A DNA stretch of 15,489 nt from Zygophlyctis sp. KS116 (taxonomy: Eukaryota > Fungi > Chytridiomycota). Below are positions 1-9,525 of the stretch, in pieces (the stretch's first letter is position 1; each line of letters starts with the position of its first letter). The notes below the pieces were generated by a model that did not search any database, had not been told where the DNA came from, and saw nothing but the letters and a program-made list of their open reading frames with translations. The translations under genes were made by a program, and so were the position numbers. The DNA lies in NCBI GenBank assembly GCA_054661495.1, contig BAAFSQ010000235.1, positions 1-15,489 on the forward strand, in the 5' to 3' direction.

Positions 1-2279
1 TTGAGGTATCGAACCTGGTGCTCGACTCTATGGACTTATTTCATTAAAAATATACCTTTTACCATCCCAGTCCTTGGGACGTTTGGTTTCGTTAGGTTTG
101 ATGCATCTAACATATGAAGGGACACACCGCATTAAAGTATCCACCAGGTCTTGAGATTGATTTTTGATCTTAAATGATGCTGTAGTTGGCCTTTTTTTGT
201 CGCTCTCGTCGATTTCTTCTGGGAAAAGATTAAGGATAAACTGACTTTCATTTAAATGAGAAAAGCATTACCTACTAGAGCTCTGCATCAACTGTATAAG
301 ATCTTTAAAGAGTGTGTCCTTGTTATTTTCTACAAATCCATCACAATCATAAGTCACATTTCCAGCGTAATGCTGAACTACAAACTGACGCTGCATACCA
401 TTATAATGCTTATGCTCTGAGCAAGAAAGTGTTAGTTTCTATGAATTAAATGCACATTAAAACTCACCTGGACAAACTTTTCATCGGCTCCCTCCGCAAC
501 AGCGTGCATCGTCGAGCAAACATCATCCAATACTTTGCGTAAATGATTGTCATAGAATTACCAGCCATAATACCTGGGGGTCTTTTACTCTCAATGAGCT
601 CAACGACAATTTTGTTATTAAAATACTCTATCGGAGTCCATTTAATCCCTTCCTTTTGATACTCTTCCTGTCTATTAGCCAGAAATTATTACCTGTTCTG
701 ATTTAAGTGTAAGTTCAATAAATATTTGCTGCAATTTTTCATTCACAAAATTAATACAAAATTGCTCGAAACCATTTCTATCAAATATTTCGAATCCAAA
801 AATATCTAACACACCAATGCAAAGCTGGGAAGTTGATTTTAAATTGGAAGCTATTCGTGCCATAGCCTTATTGACAGCTAATACAATCCAGTCAAACAAG
901 CGAAAATATAAAGCCTTGGCTAAAGCATCACGGTTATTTGATGCTTGCTGAACATTCATTGGAACTGTGTATGTCGAGCCTCTACGAGCCCCAAATCCAC
1001 CAGTTCGAAGGACCCGATTTAACAGTTTTTCTTTTAAGAGGGTCTCCTCGATGCAAAGTAAATATGCCGGAAACGCCAATGCTAAAAATTAAATTCTGAT
1101 CAATTACATTCAGGATCTGCTATAGCCGCTATTGTACCATCTTCTACAAAATCAATATTCCCTAAATGCAGAATCCCTGCTAAAATACTAAAAATAGAGG
1201 ATTTATCTTGTGCAGAGATCCCACATACATCCATAGCTTTTTTCATTTCTGCGTATTCTTCTAAATCATCGATCCCCGCAGCATCATATTCTCCACTTGC
1301 GTTCAAATATCTATAATATTTAGGCTCTATTAGCCCCAAATTTTCTTTATCTGCAGCAGTCGCACCTTTGGTTATTTGATAAAAAACATGAAAATTCCGT
1401 TCCCCCTTCCCAGGAGCCACAACACGAGACTAATGTTATTGAAAAGCGAAATACCTTTTCAAGCAAGAAATTTGAAATTTTTCCTCCAGTTGGAGCCCCG
1501 CCTCTTGAGAAATTAATCTCAAAATATTTTCCAAACCGTGAAGAATTATTATTCCTCAAAGTTTTTGCATTTCCAAATGACTCTAATAGAGGATTTGATA
1601 AAAAAATAATTGTTTTAATCTCATCAACTAATTTGCTCATTTCTTCTCCACCTCTTCCTGATGTAGCAGCAATAAATTTCCTACAATTATATATTCTAAA
1701 TGTTACATGATTAACTTTGCAGACTCTGTCTTTCCCGCACCTTGGAAATTAAAAAAGTTTGAAACGTACCTGATTCTCCAGAAATAATCACACATTGACT
1801 TTCTTCATCAATAATCATATTTTGAAACCTAAATTGTCAATAATTTTCATTATACATTCTATCTGCAACTGCATAAATATGTGGAGGCTGTTCAAATGCC
1901 GCCTAAAGTTAGATCATTTGCGTGTCAAGGGCGATGCAAAACTTGTGCAACAATTTCAAGCTACATAAATTCAACAAATCACCCTTGATCCCAATTTGAA
2001 GAAATTACTTACACTTCCGTGATATAAATCAATTTCTTTTTGAGTAAAATACGGCATTTGCTTATACGGATTTACCGCAACCAATGCAGGTCCAATATAA
2101 GTAAACATGCAGTCAGCATTAATTCTAAAGGATAAACAATACTGAATTACCGTTTTTTCAAGTTTTCTGTAATTTGTTCGTCCGAAACTTTGGTCAATAG
2201 AACCATGTCTTCAACGCCCTAAACTTTTAGCGGCAGCAAAGGATACATTTTGAGAGTTTTTAGATGTCCACTGACTCAT
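1..2279 (-). CDS. MYO1: Class I myosin heavy chain (motor domain; continues past the left edge of the window)
   Basis: The spliced translation begins [11 protein letters not shown]|[11 protein letters not shown]. It contains P-loop ISGESGAGKTE, switch [21 protein letters not shown], switch [14 protein letters not shown] region [11 protein letters not shown] and [16 protein letters not shown]. There are 13 GT-AG introns: 2219-2246, 2125-2150, 1903-2012, 1829-1855, 1741-1769, 1681-1706, 1430-1454, 1082-1107, 668-692, 533-561, 439-467, 245-271, 28-55. Confidence 0.96.
1925..1988 (-). repeat. Inverted repeat / RNA hairpin inside the 110-nt myosin intron
   Basis: TCAAGGGCGAT (1925-1935) and ATCACCCTTGA (1978-1988) form an 11-bp stem with one U-G wobble on the transcribed strand. 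Confidence 0.8.
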
Positions 2280-3319
2280 TCTTTAAAGCGCACTTAGAAT
2301 TCCTTCCTTTTCCCTATTTGAGCTCAGAGACTCAATTGCTTACTTTAGTTTACTTTTGTTTTTCTGGTCTCGACTTATTATCTAATAAGAGTTTATCTGA
2401 TAGTATGCCGGTTGATAAGAGTATAGAATGGATATATTCTCTACAATCTCAATTTGGATTTAAAGGGTTTTCTTCCGATAACGGACCTCACCTCACAATG
2501 ACGTACTGCGGACTATTATGTTTATTGATCTTGGGTGATGATCTATCAAGGATACACAAGACTGAATTTATTAATAATGCTAAAGATTGTCAAACTGATA
2601 CTGGAGCTTTTGTACCATTTAAAGGATCAACAGAGTCAGATCTAAGGTTTATGTTTAGCGCAATCGCTGTTTTAACAATTTTAAATAGCAATCATACAAT
2701 TAATAAGGACAAGGCTATAGATTATATTAAAAGTTGTAAAAGTTATGATGGTAAGTACTATAGCAGAGTCTTACTGATGTAATGACGCGCATTAATTGCA
2801 TAATCATAACTAAAAAATAGGCGGATACGGTCAAAATCCAGGACAAGAGTCTCATGGAGGATCAACTTACTGTGCATTAGCTTCTCTTGCACTATTAGAA
2901 GAATTAGATCCTAAAGACCATATGGATACAGTTGTATGGTGTTTAAATAGACAAAATGGAGGATTTCAAGGAAGGTAATAATCTTAAATTCAATTGAATA
3001 GAGTTAATAAACCGTTAGATTCTTGTTATTCATTTTGGATTGGTGCATCTTTGGATGTAAGTTTATTATAAATTTATGTTAGATTTTGGGTTTTTCCAAA
3101 TATATTTCAAAAGATCTGACTCAATTTATACAATCTACTGCAAAGGATAGAGGATATGGAAAAACTCCAGGTGATTATCCTGATCTTTTACATACTTACA
3201 TGTCATTATGTGGACTTTCAATAATAGGAAATAATAATCTTGAAGAGATTTATTGTCCTCTTGGAATCACAAAACGTACTTTTAATCGCTTATTATCTCT
3301 TCAAAACTTCAAATCTTGA
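2264..3319 (+). CDS. CDC43: Geranylgeranyltransferase type I beta subunit
   Basis: Prenyltransferase repeats: [100 protein letters not shown]. Introns are 2751-2820, 2975-3001 and 3057-3082. Stop TGA is at 3317-3319. Confidence 0.92.
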
Positions 3320-3989
3320 TGAAACATGTTCCCAATTGACAACATTCCAAATTGCTTTCAAGTAATCAGGCCGCACATTCTTGTAATCAAGATAATAAGC
3401 ATGTTCCCAAACATCAACTCCTAGGAAATAAACAATTTTAAAACGTACCTAATAAAGGTTCCAAATGTAATAATGGATCTTGATTAGGCGTGGTTGCAAT
3501 TTCTAGTTTTTGACTAGTTTTATTGTATCCCAACCATCCCCATCCAGATCCTTGAACTCCAGCAGAAGCAGCAGAAAATGCAGTTTTAAACGCATCAACA
3601 GATCCAAAATCTCTTTCAATCGCAGACTTGAGATTTCCTAATATTAAAAAGAATGAATTACCGGTTTTTAACTCTGCAGCATTACTCTTGCTGGGAGTTA
3701 AGCAATTCCAAAAAAACGTATGATTGATATGACCGCCACCGTTAAACTTGATTGCCGGCTCAAGACCAATGATTGCTTTTAAATCCTTTTTTGCAATTGC
3801 AGAATCCAACTTTTCAGACGCAATATTCAAATTAGCAACATAAGCTGCATGATGCTTCTTATGATGAAGCTCCATGATCTGAGCTGAAATAAACGGCTCG
3901 AGCTATGATATTATACAATCTGAATTTACCGCAGGATAGTCAAACGGAAGATCGGGAAGAGAATGCTTTAATCGCTTCAGTAACTTCAT
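3293..3989 (-). CDS. SOD2: Manganese superoxide dismutase (mitochondrial type)
   Basis: [53 protein letters not shown]. Introns are 3903-3929, 3638-3661 and 3421-3448. The protein ends ..SRFEVLKR with TAA at 3293-3295. Confidence 0.96.
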
Positions 3990-4046
3990 TGCAAATTTTC
4001 AGCGCTTAATGGCAGACTTTAATGATTGGAAAATTTATATAAACTA

Positions 4047-5155
4047 TCAACTAGTTACAGTAAATACTCTTGAATGATGTCTAAAAGATTGTGTCCTTCT
4101 AGTAGATGGAGGTACAGGAACTGTAATTGACTGAAATGATTGACTAGTCTTTATAGGAGGCATTGGTATTTTTGTTTTTAGACAAGGTGATTTATCAGTT
4201 TCTGGTATATCAATACTAGTAGGCCTTGTTTGTTTTTTTGATCCTGCTAAACGAGCATGAACTCTTGCTCGAAGAATTGAAATTTGTTTTTTACTAATTA
4301 TTGAAGATACTATAATTATTAAAAATAAAATTTACTTGGAGGAACTGGTTTCTTAATTGATGCAACAGATTTAGGACGATTTATACTATCATGATCCACT
4401 TCATCTGATTTAATTTGAATGTTTGTAATAGGATTACAAGACTCTTGTAAATTTTCCTTTATAATTGCCAATTGTATATTGTCTAATGGTACATCATCCA
4501 AAATTTCCAATTGAGGAATTAATGTACTTACAATATGTCTATTTCTTACAAGTATATCAGCACTTTTCTCAGATTCTTGAAGAACAGAGTCATAATTTAT
4601 AGGATTATCTAGAATTGTTAGAGATTTTAGATTAGGACAATAGACTAAATATTCAATTTGTAATAGATCTGATACAAGATTTCTAAAATTTAGAGAATAT
4701 ACTAACCTTTCAATATCTAGTATTTCTAAATTTTCCAACATACTAATTGCATCTAGACTTGTTATTTGATTAAATGCCAAATAAAGTTCTTTTAAACCAG
4801 TTAATGATCCCAACCCATCAATTTCTGATAAATTACATCTAGCCATCTTTAGACATTTTAAATTAGAATAACCAGTTCCTAAATCTCTTGAAATTATTTG
4901 ACAGAGATTACCTGATTGTAGGAACAAAACTATTATTTAATGTCAACAAGGACAAGTTTGGTAACCATTTTCCTGAATAATTATTTCAATATTATTACCA
5001 ATATTTCCAAGTCCGATTTCACTCCTTGTGTCAAATTTCATCGCCAGTTGTTGAATTTTGACAAGATCCGATTGACCAGCTATGCCCAGAATCTTTTGAG
5101 TTGTCAGCGATCCAAATAATATATCATGAATGTCTTGGCATGTACTCTTTTCCAT
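4047..5155 (-). CDS. LRRC56: Leucine-rich repeat protein 56 homolog (IFT/outer dynein arm associated, ODA8-like)
   Basis: The spliced segment [80 protein letters not shown] matches my recollection of LRRC56 LRRs, followed by a Pro/Ser-rich tail. Introns are 4973-4998, 4887-4911, 4683-4706 and 4310-4335. Confidence 0.82.
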
Positions 5156-5244
5156 TTTATAAATCTACGGTAATTTTCTCGGAATTTTCGAGCGCCAAAT
5201 CGACTTACAAGAGCTTCATACAAGTCAATTTTAGGAAATTCACA

Positions 5245-8114
5245 ATGGCCATGAGAGGGCTAAACGTTTTTATATCAGACTTGAGAAATTGCAGGACCAG
5301 AGAGTTTGAAACTCTTCGAATTAACAAGGAATTGGCAAATATTCGAAGTAAATTTAAAGACTTGAATTTAAATGGCTATCAAAAGAAAAAGTATATTGCA
5401 AAGCTTGCGTTTATTTATATAATGGGCTATGATATAGAATTTGGACATTCAGAAGCGATAAGTTTAATGTCATGCTCTGCGTATTCAGAGAAAAGTATTG
5501 TAAGAATATTCAATTTAATAAACCCATAAGGGGTACATGGCAGTCATTCTTTTTGTTTCGCAAAAAGTAGAATTTACAAAATTATTAATTAATTCTATTC
5601 AAAAGGATTTACAGGATTCAAATGAATTAAATGTTTGTTTGGCTTTACAGGCAATCGCAAATATTGCAAGTAAAGAAATGTTGGAGTCTTTAGGAAATAT
5701 TGTTTTAAAATTAATATTATCGTAAATATTTATGGTTAAAGTAAAAGGAGGTCTGAATATATAAGAAGAAAAGGAGCTCTAACACTTTTGGGTTTATATA
5801 GAAAATATCCAGAATTTGTGCTTCCAGAAGAATTATCAGATAAAGTTGTGAAATCTTTTGGAGATAATGTTTGTGATTTTTATAATAATTTTATAGATTA
5901 ATTTACAATCTACGTCTGCATTGGCCCTTTATTTGGCAAAGAAATCACCTGATAATTATATAAAATGTGTAGATTTGGCAATTTTACATTTAAATTCTGT
6001 AAATTTGATTATTTTAAAGGTAGATTATAATTGGGAAAAGTTGTTTACCGGATTTAGTATATTATGGGATTCCGGCTCCATGGTTACAAATACAATTGTT
6101 TCAGATTTTACAAATTTATGCTCCAATTTGTAAGTTTTACAATCTTATATAAAGTTTCTACTAATCAGAAGTTGCAGGTTGAAAAGATTGTTGAGGCGTC
6201 TTTGACGGCTCCAGAAGAAAAATCTGCAAATATTCAGAGAGCAAATATTAAGTTATCGGTTATATTTGAAGCTATTAAACTTATTATTGTTGTAGATAGA
6301 CAATCAAAAAATGTTGCTACAGCATTGACAATTTTAGCACATTTTTTAACAGCAAAGGAAACAAACTTTAGATATGTGGGTTTGGATATTCTGTCGCATT
6401 TTATTGAATATCCAGAAACAAAAGCACAAGTTTTGCTTCATATAGACACGATAATTGAGTCGCTCAAAGATAGAGACTTGAGTGTTCAGCAACGTGCACT
6501 GGATCTTCTATTTTATATATGCGATGGAAATATTGCTGGAAGGATTGTAAAGGAACTAATTGACTTTTTGCCGATTGCAAACTATGAAATTCATGATGAG
6601 CTGGTCCTCAAAATTGCGATTTTAGCAGAGAAATTTGGTAAGAGCCGTGCTTGGTTTATAGATATTATCTTGGAACTGATTAATACATCCGGAGAAAATG
6701 TTGGTGATGAAATTTGGTTTCGAGTAGTGCAAATTGTAACTAATCACGAGGAAGTTCGTGAATACTCTACATCTAGGATCTTGAAAGATATGAAACGAGA
6801 GCTCTGTAACGAGAAAATTGTACGAATTGCTGGATATATTATTGGAGAATACGGTCATTTAATCGCAAACGAGCCGGGATCCTCTCCTCTAGAGCAATTT
6901 ATGGCTCTTCACTCTAAATTTCGAACTGTTTCTAATTCGACCCGTTGTATTTTACTTTCAACCTATTTGAAAATGGTCAATCTCTTTCCCGAAATCAAGC
7001 ATGAAATAGTTAGAGTTTTTCAGCAATATAGCTTCTGTATTGATTTGGAGCTGCAACAAAGAGCATGTGAATATTTAGCGATTATTGAAATGGATACGGA
7101 TGATTTATTGCAAGCAATATGTGAAGAAATGCCGCATTTTCCAGAGAAGCATAATATTCTTATTAATCAGCTGGAGCTCAAATATCAGGATTCATCCAAT
7201 GAAAAAGCACTAAAACTTTTAAAGTCGCAAAGTGCAAAACCTGCAATCGACACGGATATATCAAGTCTAGTACTTTCTAATGAAGTGATTTCACCTTTTA
7301 AAGAAGAATCTCAGTCAACAGACTTGTTGGATTTACGTTCGGAAGATGTGGCCACACCTGTAAAGCCTTTCACTAATTTACTTCAAAAACTGTATACTGA
7401 AAATTCTGGAATTTTGTATGAAGATAATGCGATTCAAATAGGTGTTAAGATGGAATTCCGAAATAATCTCGGTAAGATTGCTGTATTTTATGGAAACAAA
7501 TTGAATGTTGGCTTAGATAATGTTTGCTCAGAAATAGAATCGGAGTCTTTTCTCAAGACCAACCTTGTACAATCCATAGCAGAAACAATTCCTGCCAGCA
7601 CTCAATATCATCAACTTTTTGATTTGGAATGCGTTTCAGTGATTAACACGCTTCCAATTTTAAAGCTCAAGTTTGAAATCGGCGCTCAAATCCCAAAAGA
7701 ATTCAGGCTTCAGCTTCCAATTATCGTATCAAAATTTATTGTTCCTGTTCATTTAAATTATTCAGTTTTTGCAGAACGATGGAAACAACTTGAATCTGTA
7801 AATCTCGAATTCAAGAATAGCATTTCGCTAGAGTCACTATCAAGCCCTCAAAATGTTGCAGGAATCCTAAAATCTTTAAATATTCAAGTTTTGGAGGGCC
7901 TAGATGAAGAATCACTAGAAATGAAAGGCTCAGGAATATTTTGTTCCACAAAGGAAGCCAAAGTTGGATGCCTGATATCCATTGTAAAGTCTGAATCGGT
8001 AATACATATAATCATAATCAATAGAGCCTTACAACAATTGTACGTACTACTAATCAGCCAGTATCATTTGCCCTGGGAGATGTAATTCAAAAAGCCTTAA
8101 CTTTTGTTGAGTAA
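5245..8114 (+). CDS. APL3: AP-2 adaptor complex alpha subunit (alpha-adaptin)
   Basis: Begins [31 protein letters not shown]. Trunk motifs [10 protein letters not shown] and [11 protein letters not shown], then the alpha ear ([23 protein letters not shown]). Introns are 5500-5530, 5722-5747 (or 5741), 5869-5896, 5999-6023, 6130-6154 and 7999-8024. Stop TAA is at 8112-8114. Confidence 0.95.
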
Positions 8115-8121
8115 ATAAGTA

Positions 8122-8161
8122 CAAGTATATTCCGATGACTCCAAGATATTCCGATGAGTTC
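8122..8161 (+). repeat. Imperfect tandem duplication (~20 nt) spanning the ARMH2-like start codon
   Basis: caagtatattccgatgactc / caagatattccgatgagttc, with the 12-mer atattccgatga exactly repeated. Confidence 0.75.
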
Positions 8162-8834
8162 CAGACGAGATTCATTCTTTTCTGTACTGGGCTATCGCTC
8201 CAAGAATCCTAATTCCTCCAAAGAAAATTCCAAAGGTCCAGTCAATCCCTATTTAAAAACATTGTCCGAACAAACAATGATTTTGCGAGATACTGTCTCT
8301 AGCATTCATGATCGGACATTGGCAAGTGAAAGAATCGCATATTGTATTTACATTGGAGGAGCTATTATTGAGCCATACTTGAAAAAAGACTCTCTAATCA
8401 TTGATGTAATTCTTTCGATTTTGATGGAGGAATCTGAGAATTTGGAATTAAAACTAGTAATATATTTTAAAAATCCAAAATCATAGAAATCAATTGAACT
8501 TTTACATGTTCTTACTAGATGTGGTAAAATCGTTCAAGAAATTTTAGGAGAGAAGAGAGCATTTGCAGTTTTGGAATATGTAATGATAAACTTTATTGGT
8601 AATTTTATAATCTAATTTAAAGGAGAAATGCGAAGATGGGCAGTCAGTGGACTATTAAATATGTCTTTTAAAAACCATTCAAAATACAAGACTCGTTTAA
8701 GTCAGATCTCTTTCAGGGTAATTTATAATTATTTACTTTAGCAATCCCTAGAATTAGCAATCCATGATGATTGGAGTTCTTGGAATTTAAATGAAGCCAA
8801 TGAACTAGAGACTTTAATCCAATTAATCAAGTAG
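8154..8834 (+). CDS. Armadillo-like helical protein, ARMH2 (C6orf229)-like
   Basis: RTLASERIAYCIYIGG and the C-terminal DDWSSWNLNEANEL resemble ARMH2 motifs as I recall them (RAQAAQKIGLLAFTGG; NWSGWTENFAEVL). Introns are 8457-8486, 8599-8622 and 8718-8741. Stop TAG is at 8832-8834. Confidence 0.6.
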
Positions 8835-8841
8835 GAAAAGA

Positions 8842-9525
8842 TTATTTCTTGACTCTATCCCCAAAAATCAAACTTCCAACACGAACATTTGTTGAACCTT
8901 GTCTTATAGCCAATTCAAAATCATTAGACATTCCAAAACTTTTTTCTAATTTGATTCCTAATTGATCTGATATATTATTTGCTAAATTATTTAATTTGAC
9001 AAAATCAGGATTTTCCTCTAAAGAATCTTGACGAACAGCACCAATAGTCATTAATCCTAATAATTGTAAATTATGACAATTGGTTAAAATGTGTTTTGCA
9101 ATTGTTAAACATTCAGAATCTTGCAGCCCATTTTTTGCATCTTCCATACTAGTATTAACCTGTAAGAAAATCCCCAATTTCCTATCAAATCCCCAATTCT
9201 TATTAAAATTATCAGCCATTTTTATAGAATCTATAGTTTCCACAACCAAATTTGGTATTGAAGTTAGAAATTTAATCTTGTTTGATTGTACTTTTCCTAT
9301 AAAGTGCCACATTATATCTTTTGGCGCATTAGTAGCCTTTTCAATCAATTCTTGTACATAATTTTCCCCAAAAACTCGTTGTCCAGCCTCATACGCAATC
9401 ATGACATCTTGTAATGGTTTAGTCTTTGAAACAGCCACAAGTCTCACTACACTTGCGTTTGCCTCTGATGCTTTCAGGATTTTCGCTTGTATTAATGCCA
9501 AGTTCTTTACGATATTCCCATTCAT
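8842..9525 (-). CDS. PLPBP: Pyridoxal phosphate homeostasis protein (YggS/PROSC family), intronless
   Basis: LVAVSKTKP (PLP-binding lysine), FGENYVQEL, WHFIG..QSNK, GLMTIG, SFGMSNDFELAI..GSTNVRVGSLIFG. Uninterrupted 227-aa ORF. Confidence 0.96.
   Translation of the reverse strand: MNGNIVKNLALIQAKILKASEANASVVRLVAVSKTKPLQDVMIAYEAGQRVFGENYVQELIEKATNAPKDIMWHFIGKVQSNKIKFLTSIPNLVVETIDSIKMADNFNKNWGFDRKLGIFLQVNTSMEDAKNGLQDSECLTIAKHILTNCHNLQLLGLMTIGAVRQDSLEENPDFVKLNNLANNISDQLGIKLEKSFGMSNDFELAIRQGSTNVRVGSLIFGDRVKK

Follow-up and report, generated by a model that had tools for sequence, protein, structure and literature searches.

The window analysed here, a 15,489-nt stretch of DNA from the chytrid fungus Zygophlyctis sp. 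KS116 (contig BAAFSQ010000235.1 of assembly GCA_054661495.1), carries two divergently oriented genes whose coding sequences very probably overlap at their starts. On the minus strand lies the gene of a class I myosin, and on the plus strand that of the beta subunit of protein geranylgeranyltransferase type I (GGTase-I beta). The bases that they share, 2264–2279 (16 nt), read M-S-T-D-S-F on the plus strand and M-S-Q-W-T-S on the minus strand; that is, the first five codons and one further base of either gene are mutually antisense, and the pair has zero intergenic DNA. As judged by sequence comparison across lineages, which is how splicing, translation starts and the overlap itself were all assessed, this would be a true head-to-head coding overlap that has been maintained through evolution in an ultra-compact fungus. 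An earlier note on this DNA had claimed that 16 nt are coding on both strands and that no intergenic DNA is left between the genes; the coordinates check, and the same overlap recurs in all five lineages that were compared.

The geometry of the overlap leaves little room for change. Codon positions on the two strands are paired 1:1, 2:3 and 3:2, such that a wobble position on one strand always stands opposite a second codon position on the other. A change that is silent on both strands is therefore impossible within the overlap, and the 16 nt are nearly frozen. The five lineages, from metagenomes, were reached by a word search with GGTase exon 1, by contig look-ups and by one metagenome scan. 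They comprise the window with a near-identical strain (L001 and L002, 98% identical to the window in GGTase exon 1), L003 (71%), the group formed by L004, L005 and L007 (67%), L008 (66–68%) and L006 (62%). The earlier note had proposed a look at synteny in sister species, and the head-to-head order of myosin and GGTase together with the 16-nt overlap is found in five of the five. The overlap is identical in three lineages, and each change elsewhere alters both proteins: the single change in L008 produces S2P in GGTase and T5A in myosin, and the two changes in L006 produce T3S and D4H in GGTase and Q3D in myosin. Synonymous change is suppressed only within the overlap. None of the five third positions in GGTase codons 1–5 varies, as compared to three to five of five in every later 15-nt bin, and in the myosin frame one of five third positions varies in the overlap, as compared to three of six in the rest of exon 1. 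Dual coding predicts precisely this local suppression, which is thus a separate line of evidence for the reading of both frames.

The myosin side of the overlap consists of a very short first exon. Beginning with an ATG at 2279–2277 that is preceded, at a distance of two codons, by an in-frame TAA, exon 1 (2247–2279 on the minus strand, 33 nt) comprises the start codon and 10 further codons, which would form a short N-terminal extension before the motor domain. A predicted 28-nt intron follows (2219–2246, GTATCC...GTTTAG), after which exon 2 (2151–2218, 68 nt, GVEDMVLL...NLKK-R) begins the motor domain. The earlier note had placed the minus-strand ATG, the 28-nt GT–AG intron and the resumption at GVEDMVLL at these same coordinates, and the comparison of lineages now bears out its claim that exon and intron are real. 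Exon 1 is exactly 33 nt in five of five lineages, free of insertions and deletions from its ATG to a final AAT, and is followed in each by a GTA donor. Intron 1 measures 28 nt in the window and its near-identical strain, 26 nt in L003, 24 nt in L006 and 23 nt in both L008 and the L004, L005 and L007 group. In every lineage the AG acceptor abuts GG[CGA]-GT[TA]-GA[AG]-GA[CT]-ATG, and the frame is restored. Mean pairwise identity is 0.90 in exon 1, 0.63 in intron 1, 0.80 in exon 2, 0.59 in intron 2 and 0.81 in exon 3. Conserved, indel-free exons that surround a drifting spacer of variable length, with GT and AG fixed and the phase correct, are the signature of an intron in use. The substitutions within the exons fit a translated frame as well: of the four columns that vary among the 17 nt of exon 1 outside the overlap, three fall at third codon positions of myosin and one is a Ser/Tyr change, and exon 2, at 68 nt in all lineages, has 18 of its 23 variable columns at third positions. 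Since the frame of exon 2 is closed by a TAG immediately upstream of 2218, an unspliced myosin could start solely at Met 2206.

The rest of the myosin gene gives intron 1 an unremarkable setting. Gene models were obtained from shortest-path intron calls, amended by hand and with tblastn; exons were searched singly, and joined exons were translated locally for the open-frame check alone. The resulting myosin model has 13 introns and 614 open codons within the window and includes the P-loop GESGAGKT. Twelve of the 13 introns are 25–29 nt long, donors are GTA in 12 and GTG in one, and A or T usually precedes the AG; by length, donor and acceptor, intron 1 is ordinary among them. Intron 2 occupies 2125–2150 (26 nt). 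Exon 3 (2013–2124) matches PF00063, Myosin_head, with an E value of 3.3e-07 at profile positions 25–58, a score that falls short of the gathering cut-off owing to the small size of the piece (37 aa). The remaining motor domain (1–2012, with introns of 25–29 nt plus one of 110 nt) continues beyond the window. The outlier in length is the third intron (1903–2012, 110 nt). In the L008 lineage, the myosin frame exits exon 3 earlier, after ...KQMPYFT, which suggests an extra or shifted intron.

The window does not reach the tail of its myosin, but the 98%-identical locus L001 extends further, and its downstream open reading frames (ORFs) carry PF00063, PF06017 (TH1) and SH3, with the latter two domains together on a 407-aa ORF. 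The orthologue in Gorgonomyces haynaldii has the same motor, TH1 and SH3 domains. The minus-strand gene is a long-tailed class I myosin, as the motor domain with its P-loop and these TH1–SH3 tails establish, in agreement with the earlier identification as myosin I. In the gene model, the exon 1 peptide matches the myosin-I N-terminal extension in position and length. In Myo1b and Myo1c, an extension of about 10 residues docks between motor and lever and tunes ADP release and force sensing (PMC11892617). Such a role of the extension in myosin-I force sensing would be a reason for the retention of exon 1 despite the squeeze on this locus.

The plus-strand gene, by its similarity to profiles and solved structures, is that of GGTase-I beta, the identity that had been proposed for it. 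Its exon 1 (2264–2750, ending in SYDG) matches PF00432 across residues 5–163 with an E value of 8.7e-38 and 130.9 bits (cut-off 26.5). Among solved structures, GGTase-I beta (E value 1e-25) ranks above RabGGTase beta (6e-18) and FTase beta (2e-4), the closest solved relatives being the GGTase-I beta chains 8rdx_B and 1n4p_B, which align from residue 6; related sequences carry the database name GGTase type-1 beta. Exons 2–4 (2821–2974, 3002–3056 and 3083–3319, with introns of 70, 27 and 26 nt and the stop codon at 3317–3319) bring the model to 310 open codons, the first ORF being 172 codons. The model contains the motifs DSCYSFW and LLHTY, which, by analogy with rat GGTase-I, may hold the zinc ligands (Asp, Cys and His) of the beta subunit.

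Where this protein begins matters as much to the overlap as does the myosin exon. The ATG at 2264–2266 directly follows an in-frame TAG (2261–2263), as had been described, and the next in-frame ATG, at 2405, encodes M48. The earlier note preferred 2264 to 2405 on the ground that the later start would delete the conserved first helix. A start at M48 would remove PF00432 profile positions 8–50, and M48 is absent in two lineages, whereas M1 is invariant and the protein opens with M[SP][TS][DH]SFF in all five. Short GGTase N-termini are also found in Gorgonomyces (MSRDYKYF) and in P0131. The triplet at 2261–2263 is TAG in four of the five lineages and TTG in L004 and L007, where 10 further sense codons lacking an ATG extend upstream to a TAG. 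The ATG at 2264, as the sole start conserved among relatives, is the predicted start of GGTase.

How could two start codons have come to pass each other? Gorgonomyces haynaldii (GCA_025526955.1, locus L012), reached by a search with P0004, offers a view of what may have preceded the overlap. Here the myosin and GGTase ATGs are 29 nt apart, and myosin exon 1 lies outside the GGTase coding sequence, so that GGTase coding cannot explain the conservation of this exon. The Gorgonomyces myosin range starts at an ATG giving MAFQWSSKAQATN, continues with a 19-nt GT..AG element and then reads GVEDMVLL. Removing four 19-nt GT..AG introns, the first of them at the homologous site, yields exactly the recorded Gorgonomyces product of 1094 aa. 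By this reconstruction, the homologous exon 1 (QW[ST]SK) and a same-site intron are both part of the public Gorgonomyces model. The 29-nt spacer suggests that the overlap in the window's clade is best read as the further contraction of a tiny divergent spacer. The Gorgonomyces myosin I gene (L012:2611–5971) is curious in its own right, as its four introns are all exactly 19 nt long and follow the pattern GT[AG]...TTGAT[GA]..AG, with TTGAT as a common motif. To our knowledge, 19 nt is close to the length of the shortest spliceosomal introns known.

The neighbourhood beyond the two genes has also been kept. The Gorgonomyces locus carries a block of six genes, namely myosin I (minus), GGTase-I beta (plus), Mn-SOD (minus), LRR (minus), AP-2 alpha (plus) and Ala_racemase_N (minus, YggS-like), and the block is collinear between positions 1–9525 of the window and L012:2611–13034. 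This collinearity hints at kinship of the window's fungus with the order of Gorgonomyces haynaldii. The AP-2 alpha ORF of the window (6064–8085) has metagenomic relatives at 50–98% identity, and its best named matches, at 38–45%, are all from Chytridiomycota. These matches mark the AT-rich window (33% GC), with its ultra-short introns, as chytrid-like. A ciliate genetic code was considered for the window and rejected, given long ORFs free of TAA and TAG and relatives that are fungal. An animal with tiny introns was likewise rejected as the source, since the best named matches are chytrids. Elsewhere, GGTase keeps other company. At L015:538–547, in another compact relative, a GGTase that is 45% identical lies head to head with an ORF resembling phosphoglucose isomerase (named by eye), with the two ATGs 8 nt apart. 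At L009, Mn-SOD lies head to head with GGTase, and the called GGTase and an opposite-strand Med8-like gene overlap by 4 nt at their ends (3670–3673).

Taken together, these comparisons suggest the following scenario. The ancestral state would have been a divergent myosin/GGTase pair with a tiny spacer, such as the 29 nt of Gorgonomyces haynaldii, and further contraction would have moved both start codons past each other. Myosin would now be translated from the ATG at 2279, with its 11-codon exon 1 spliced onto the motor domain as the 28-nt intron is removed, and GGTase-I beta would be translated from the ATG at 2264. The 5′ untranslated regions would probably be very short and the two mRNAs antisense at their 5′ ends, and the two initiation complexes would probably be unable to occupy one DNA template together. 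Our reading is that the overlap arose as a side effect of genome compaction and is tolerated, rather than serving regulation.

If both starts are used, transcription poses a puzzle of its own. The earlier note had argued that each gene's transcription start must lie inside the other gene, and this follows logically from a coding overlap without intergenic DNA. The myosin transcription start would lie at or above 2280, within GGTase codons 6 onward, and the GGTase transcription start would lie at or below 2263, within myosin exon 1, intron 1 or exon 2. With starts crossed in this manner, the transcripts would run towards each other and be complementary in both leaders and in at least 16 nt besides. 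Where, then, might promoter information reside? One proposal in the earlier note, that the GC-rich intron 1 of myosin doubles as the GGTase promoter, is not supported. With a GC content of 0.43, intron 1 is the most GC-rich of the 13 myosin introns (0.18–0.35 in the others), but the orthologous introns, which are 23–26 nt long, have GC contents of 0.23–0.35, and no shared motif was found among them in the compared lineages. Likewise, no conserved embedded element is visible, as synonymous sites in myosin exon 2 and in GGTase codons 6–40 vary freely, and an inspection by eye of the 70 nt preceding each of nine start codons of the window turned up no common motif. Given this free synonymous variation and the unconserved intron 1, no embedded sequence-specific promoter element is seen. 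By analogy with other compact eukaryotes, initiation is probably tolerant of sequence and produces very short leaders.

Several considerations weigh against the coding overlap and deserve to be set against the evidence above. Splicing between 2246 and 2219 and the use of either ATG are deduced from conservation alone; a look for RNA sequencing runs, made with positions 1–6000 of the window, listed none. The Gorgonomyces support for the myosin exon is a recorded public model, which we have taken as annotated. Part of the conservation at 2247–2263 could stem from a GGTase 5′ leader, and few substitutions are available for counting in that stretch (four variable columns). Moreover, an ATG spacing of −16 nt is extreme among the divergent pairs of the window, the other two head-to-head pairs having 89 and 114 nt between their ATGs, which makes this pair an outlier even in this genome. 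These doubts lead to the alternative that there is no coding overlap: myosin would start at Met 2206, positions 2247–2279 would be kept as GGTase coding sequence plus a leader or core promoter, and the GT..AG would go unused. Met 2206, the M of GVEDM, is indeed present in every lineage, and 2264–2279 is constrained by GGTase coding in any case; the myosin splice, for its part, is read from conserved sequence. However, a leader or promoter does not readily account for a segment in which an ATG, an open frame and a GTA donor at exactly codon 11 are retained without indels in five lineages while the next 23–28 nt drift, in which the AG always adjoins the Gly codon of myosin exon 2, and in which three of the four variable sites outside the overlap are synonymous in the myosin frame. 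In Gorgonomyces, furthermore, the homologous QW[ST]SK peptide and the same-site intron are needed for the 1094-aa product, and the exon lies outside GGTase coding. We therefore consider a myosin start at Met 2206 very unlikely. The overlap as described would also vanish if GGTase started elsewhere: further downstream, on a codon other than ATG, or further upstream in an exon concealed on the strand opposite the myosin gene. The TTTTTAG directly before the ATG at 2264 does resemble a splice acceptor, and many GGTase homologues have longer N-termini. Nevertheless, no GT is found 23–31 nt upstream of 2263, such that no GT..AG intron of that length could end there, and the acceptor-like AG is replaced by TG in L004 and L007, so the lineages do not all retain an acceptor here. 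The invariant M1 and conserved MS.D/SFF in five lineages, the loss of M48 from two of them and the equally short N-termini of the Gorgonomyces and P0131 proteins all point to 2264, and GGTase third positions are frozen solely in codons 1–5, as expected under two-strand reading. A GGTase start other than 2264 is, in our estimation, very improbable.

A different kind of alternative accepts the overlap as real and makes it regulatory, with mutually exclusive initiation or pairing of RNA 5′ ends linking Rho/Cdc42 prenylation to myosin-I output. The geometry would force the two transcription units to converge over both leaders and 16 nt or more, the myosin/GGTase pairing is older than the overlap, being present in Gorgonomyces, and the products of both genes act on the actin/Rho axis. 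On the other hand, tiny spacers are expected to preserve linkage whatever the function, and myosin and GGTase are not adjacent in the lineages of Clydaea, Geranomyces, P0130, P0131, P0133 and P0134. GGTase is found head to head with other genes elsewhere (the SOD gene in L009, that of phosphoglucose isomerase in L015), and a conserved non-coding element is not visible in the compared lineages. Evolution of the overlap as a regulatory link between the two pathways thus appears highly unlikely. The crossed starts could also be pictured as a toggle, in which initiation complexes exclude each other and the mRNA 5′ ends are complementary over both start codons, resulting in reciprocal coupling. We regard this as unlikely; if true, this chytrid clade would express myosin I and its Rho/Cdc42-prenylating enzyme in reciprocal dependence on each other. 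In a milder form of the same idea, the clade may initiate transcription from elements embedded in coding sequence and produce near-leaderless mRNAs.

The reading that we prefer, a coding overlap tolerated as a by-product of compaction, places the myosin/GGTase pair within a locus that is tightly packed on its other side as well. GGTase and Mn-SOD are arranged tail to tail and share 27 nt in the window (3293–3319), 30 nt in L003 (1324–1353) and 46 nt in L006 (1263–1308). In Gorgonomyces, the two are separated by a 1-nt gap and do not overlap. Overlapping a neighbour at both ends, GGTase in the window would be a gene without private flanking DNA.

The locus is of interest beyond this genome for several reasons. 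It would provide a clean nuclear eukaryotic case in which translated starts overlap on opposite strands and whose history can be traced, with the 29-nt spacer of Gorgonomyces and the five lineages together showing how an overlap freezes sequence evolution. With all potential promoter DNA lying in coding sequence, it poses the question of how RNA polymerase II locates either start site, and it is well suited to the study of initiation that lacks dedicated promoter DNA. A public genome assembly exists for Gorgonomyces haynaldii. There is also a practical lesson for annotation. Gene callers that are ORF-based or built for standard eukaryotic genes will miss first exons of 33 nt and introns of 19–28 nt and will refuse overlapping models, the consequence of which is systematic truncation of N-termini in such genomes.

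Finally, it is instructive to compare the two genes and their arrangement with better known systems. The myosin resembles the long-tailed class I myosins, such as vertebrate MYO1E/F and fungal Myo3/5 and MyoA, in its motor, TH1 and SH3 tail. According to the gene model, it would also have a short N-terminal extension ahead of GV.DMVLL, but one placed on a separate 33-nt exon that would also be antisense coding sequence of another gene. Its partner shares with PGGT1B and Cdc43 the PF00432 toroid and the closest solved structures, but its N-terminus is very short, helix 1 being preceded by 5 residues, and the 310-codon gene overlaps its neighbours at both ends. As a pair, the two genes recall bidirectional promoters, in which divergent genes have nearby start regions and presumably one nucleosome-free region. 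Unlike in those, there is no shared intergenic promoter DNA here, and the transcription starts would be crossed, such that transcripts would converge over the overlap instead of diverging from a common spacer. The closest parallels are found in other compact eukaryotes, namely Giardia muris, microsporidia and nucleomorphs, where the coding sequences of adjacent nuclear genes likewise overlap, by anything from a few bases to a few tens, in step with extreme gene density. In Giardia muris, overlaps averaging 21 bp affect 441 genes (9.5%; PMC7641422), and microsporidian mRNAs run into neighbouring genes such that transcripts overlap (PMC2742732). Coding overlap is thus already documented in other compact eukaryotes, and the pair in the window is not categorically new. 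What distinguishes it from those overlaps is that the two starts themselves overlap, on opposite strands, that the fungus is rich in introns, that a spliced first exon takes part, and that five diverged lineages have kept the arrangement, the outgroup having a 29-nt spacer and no overlap.

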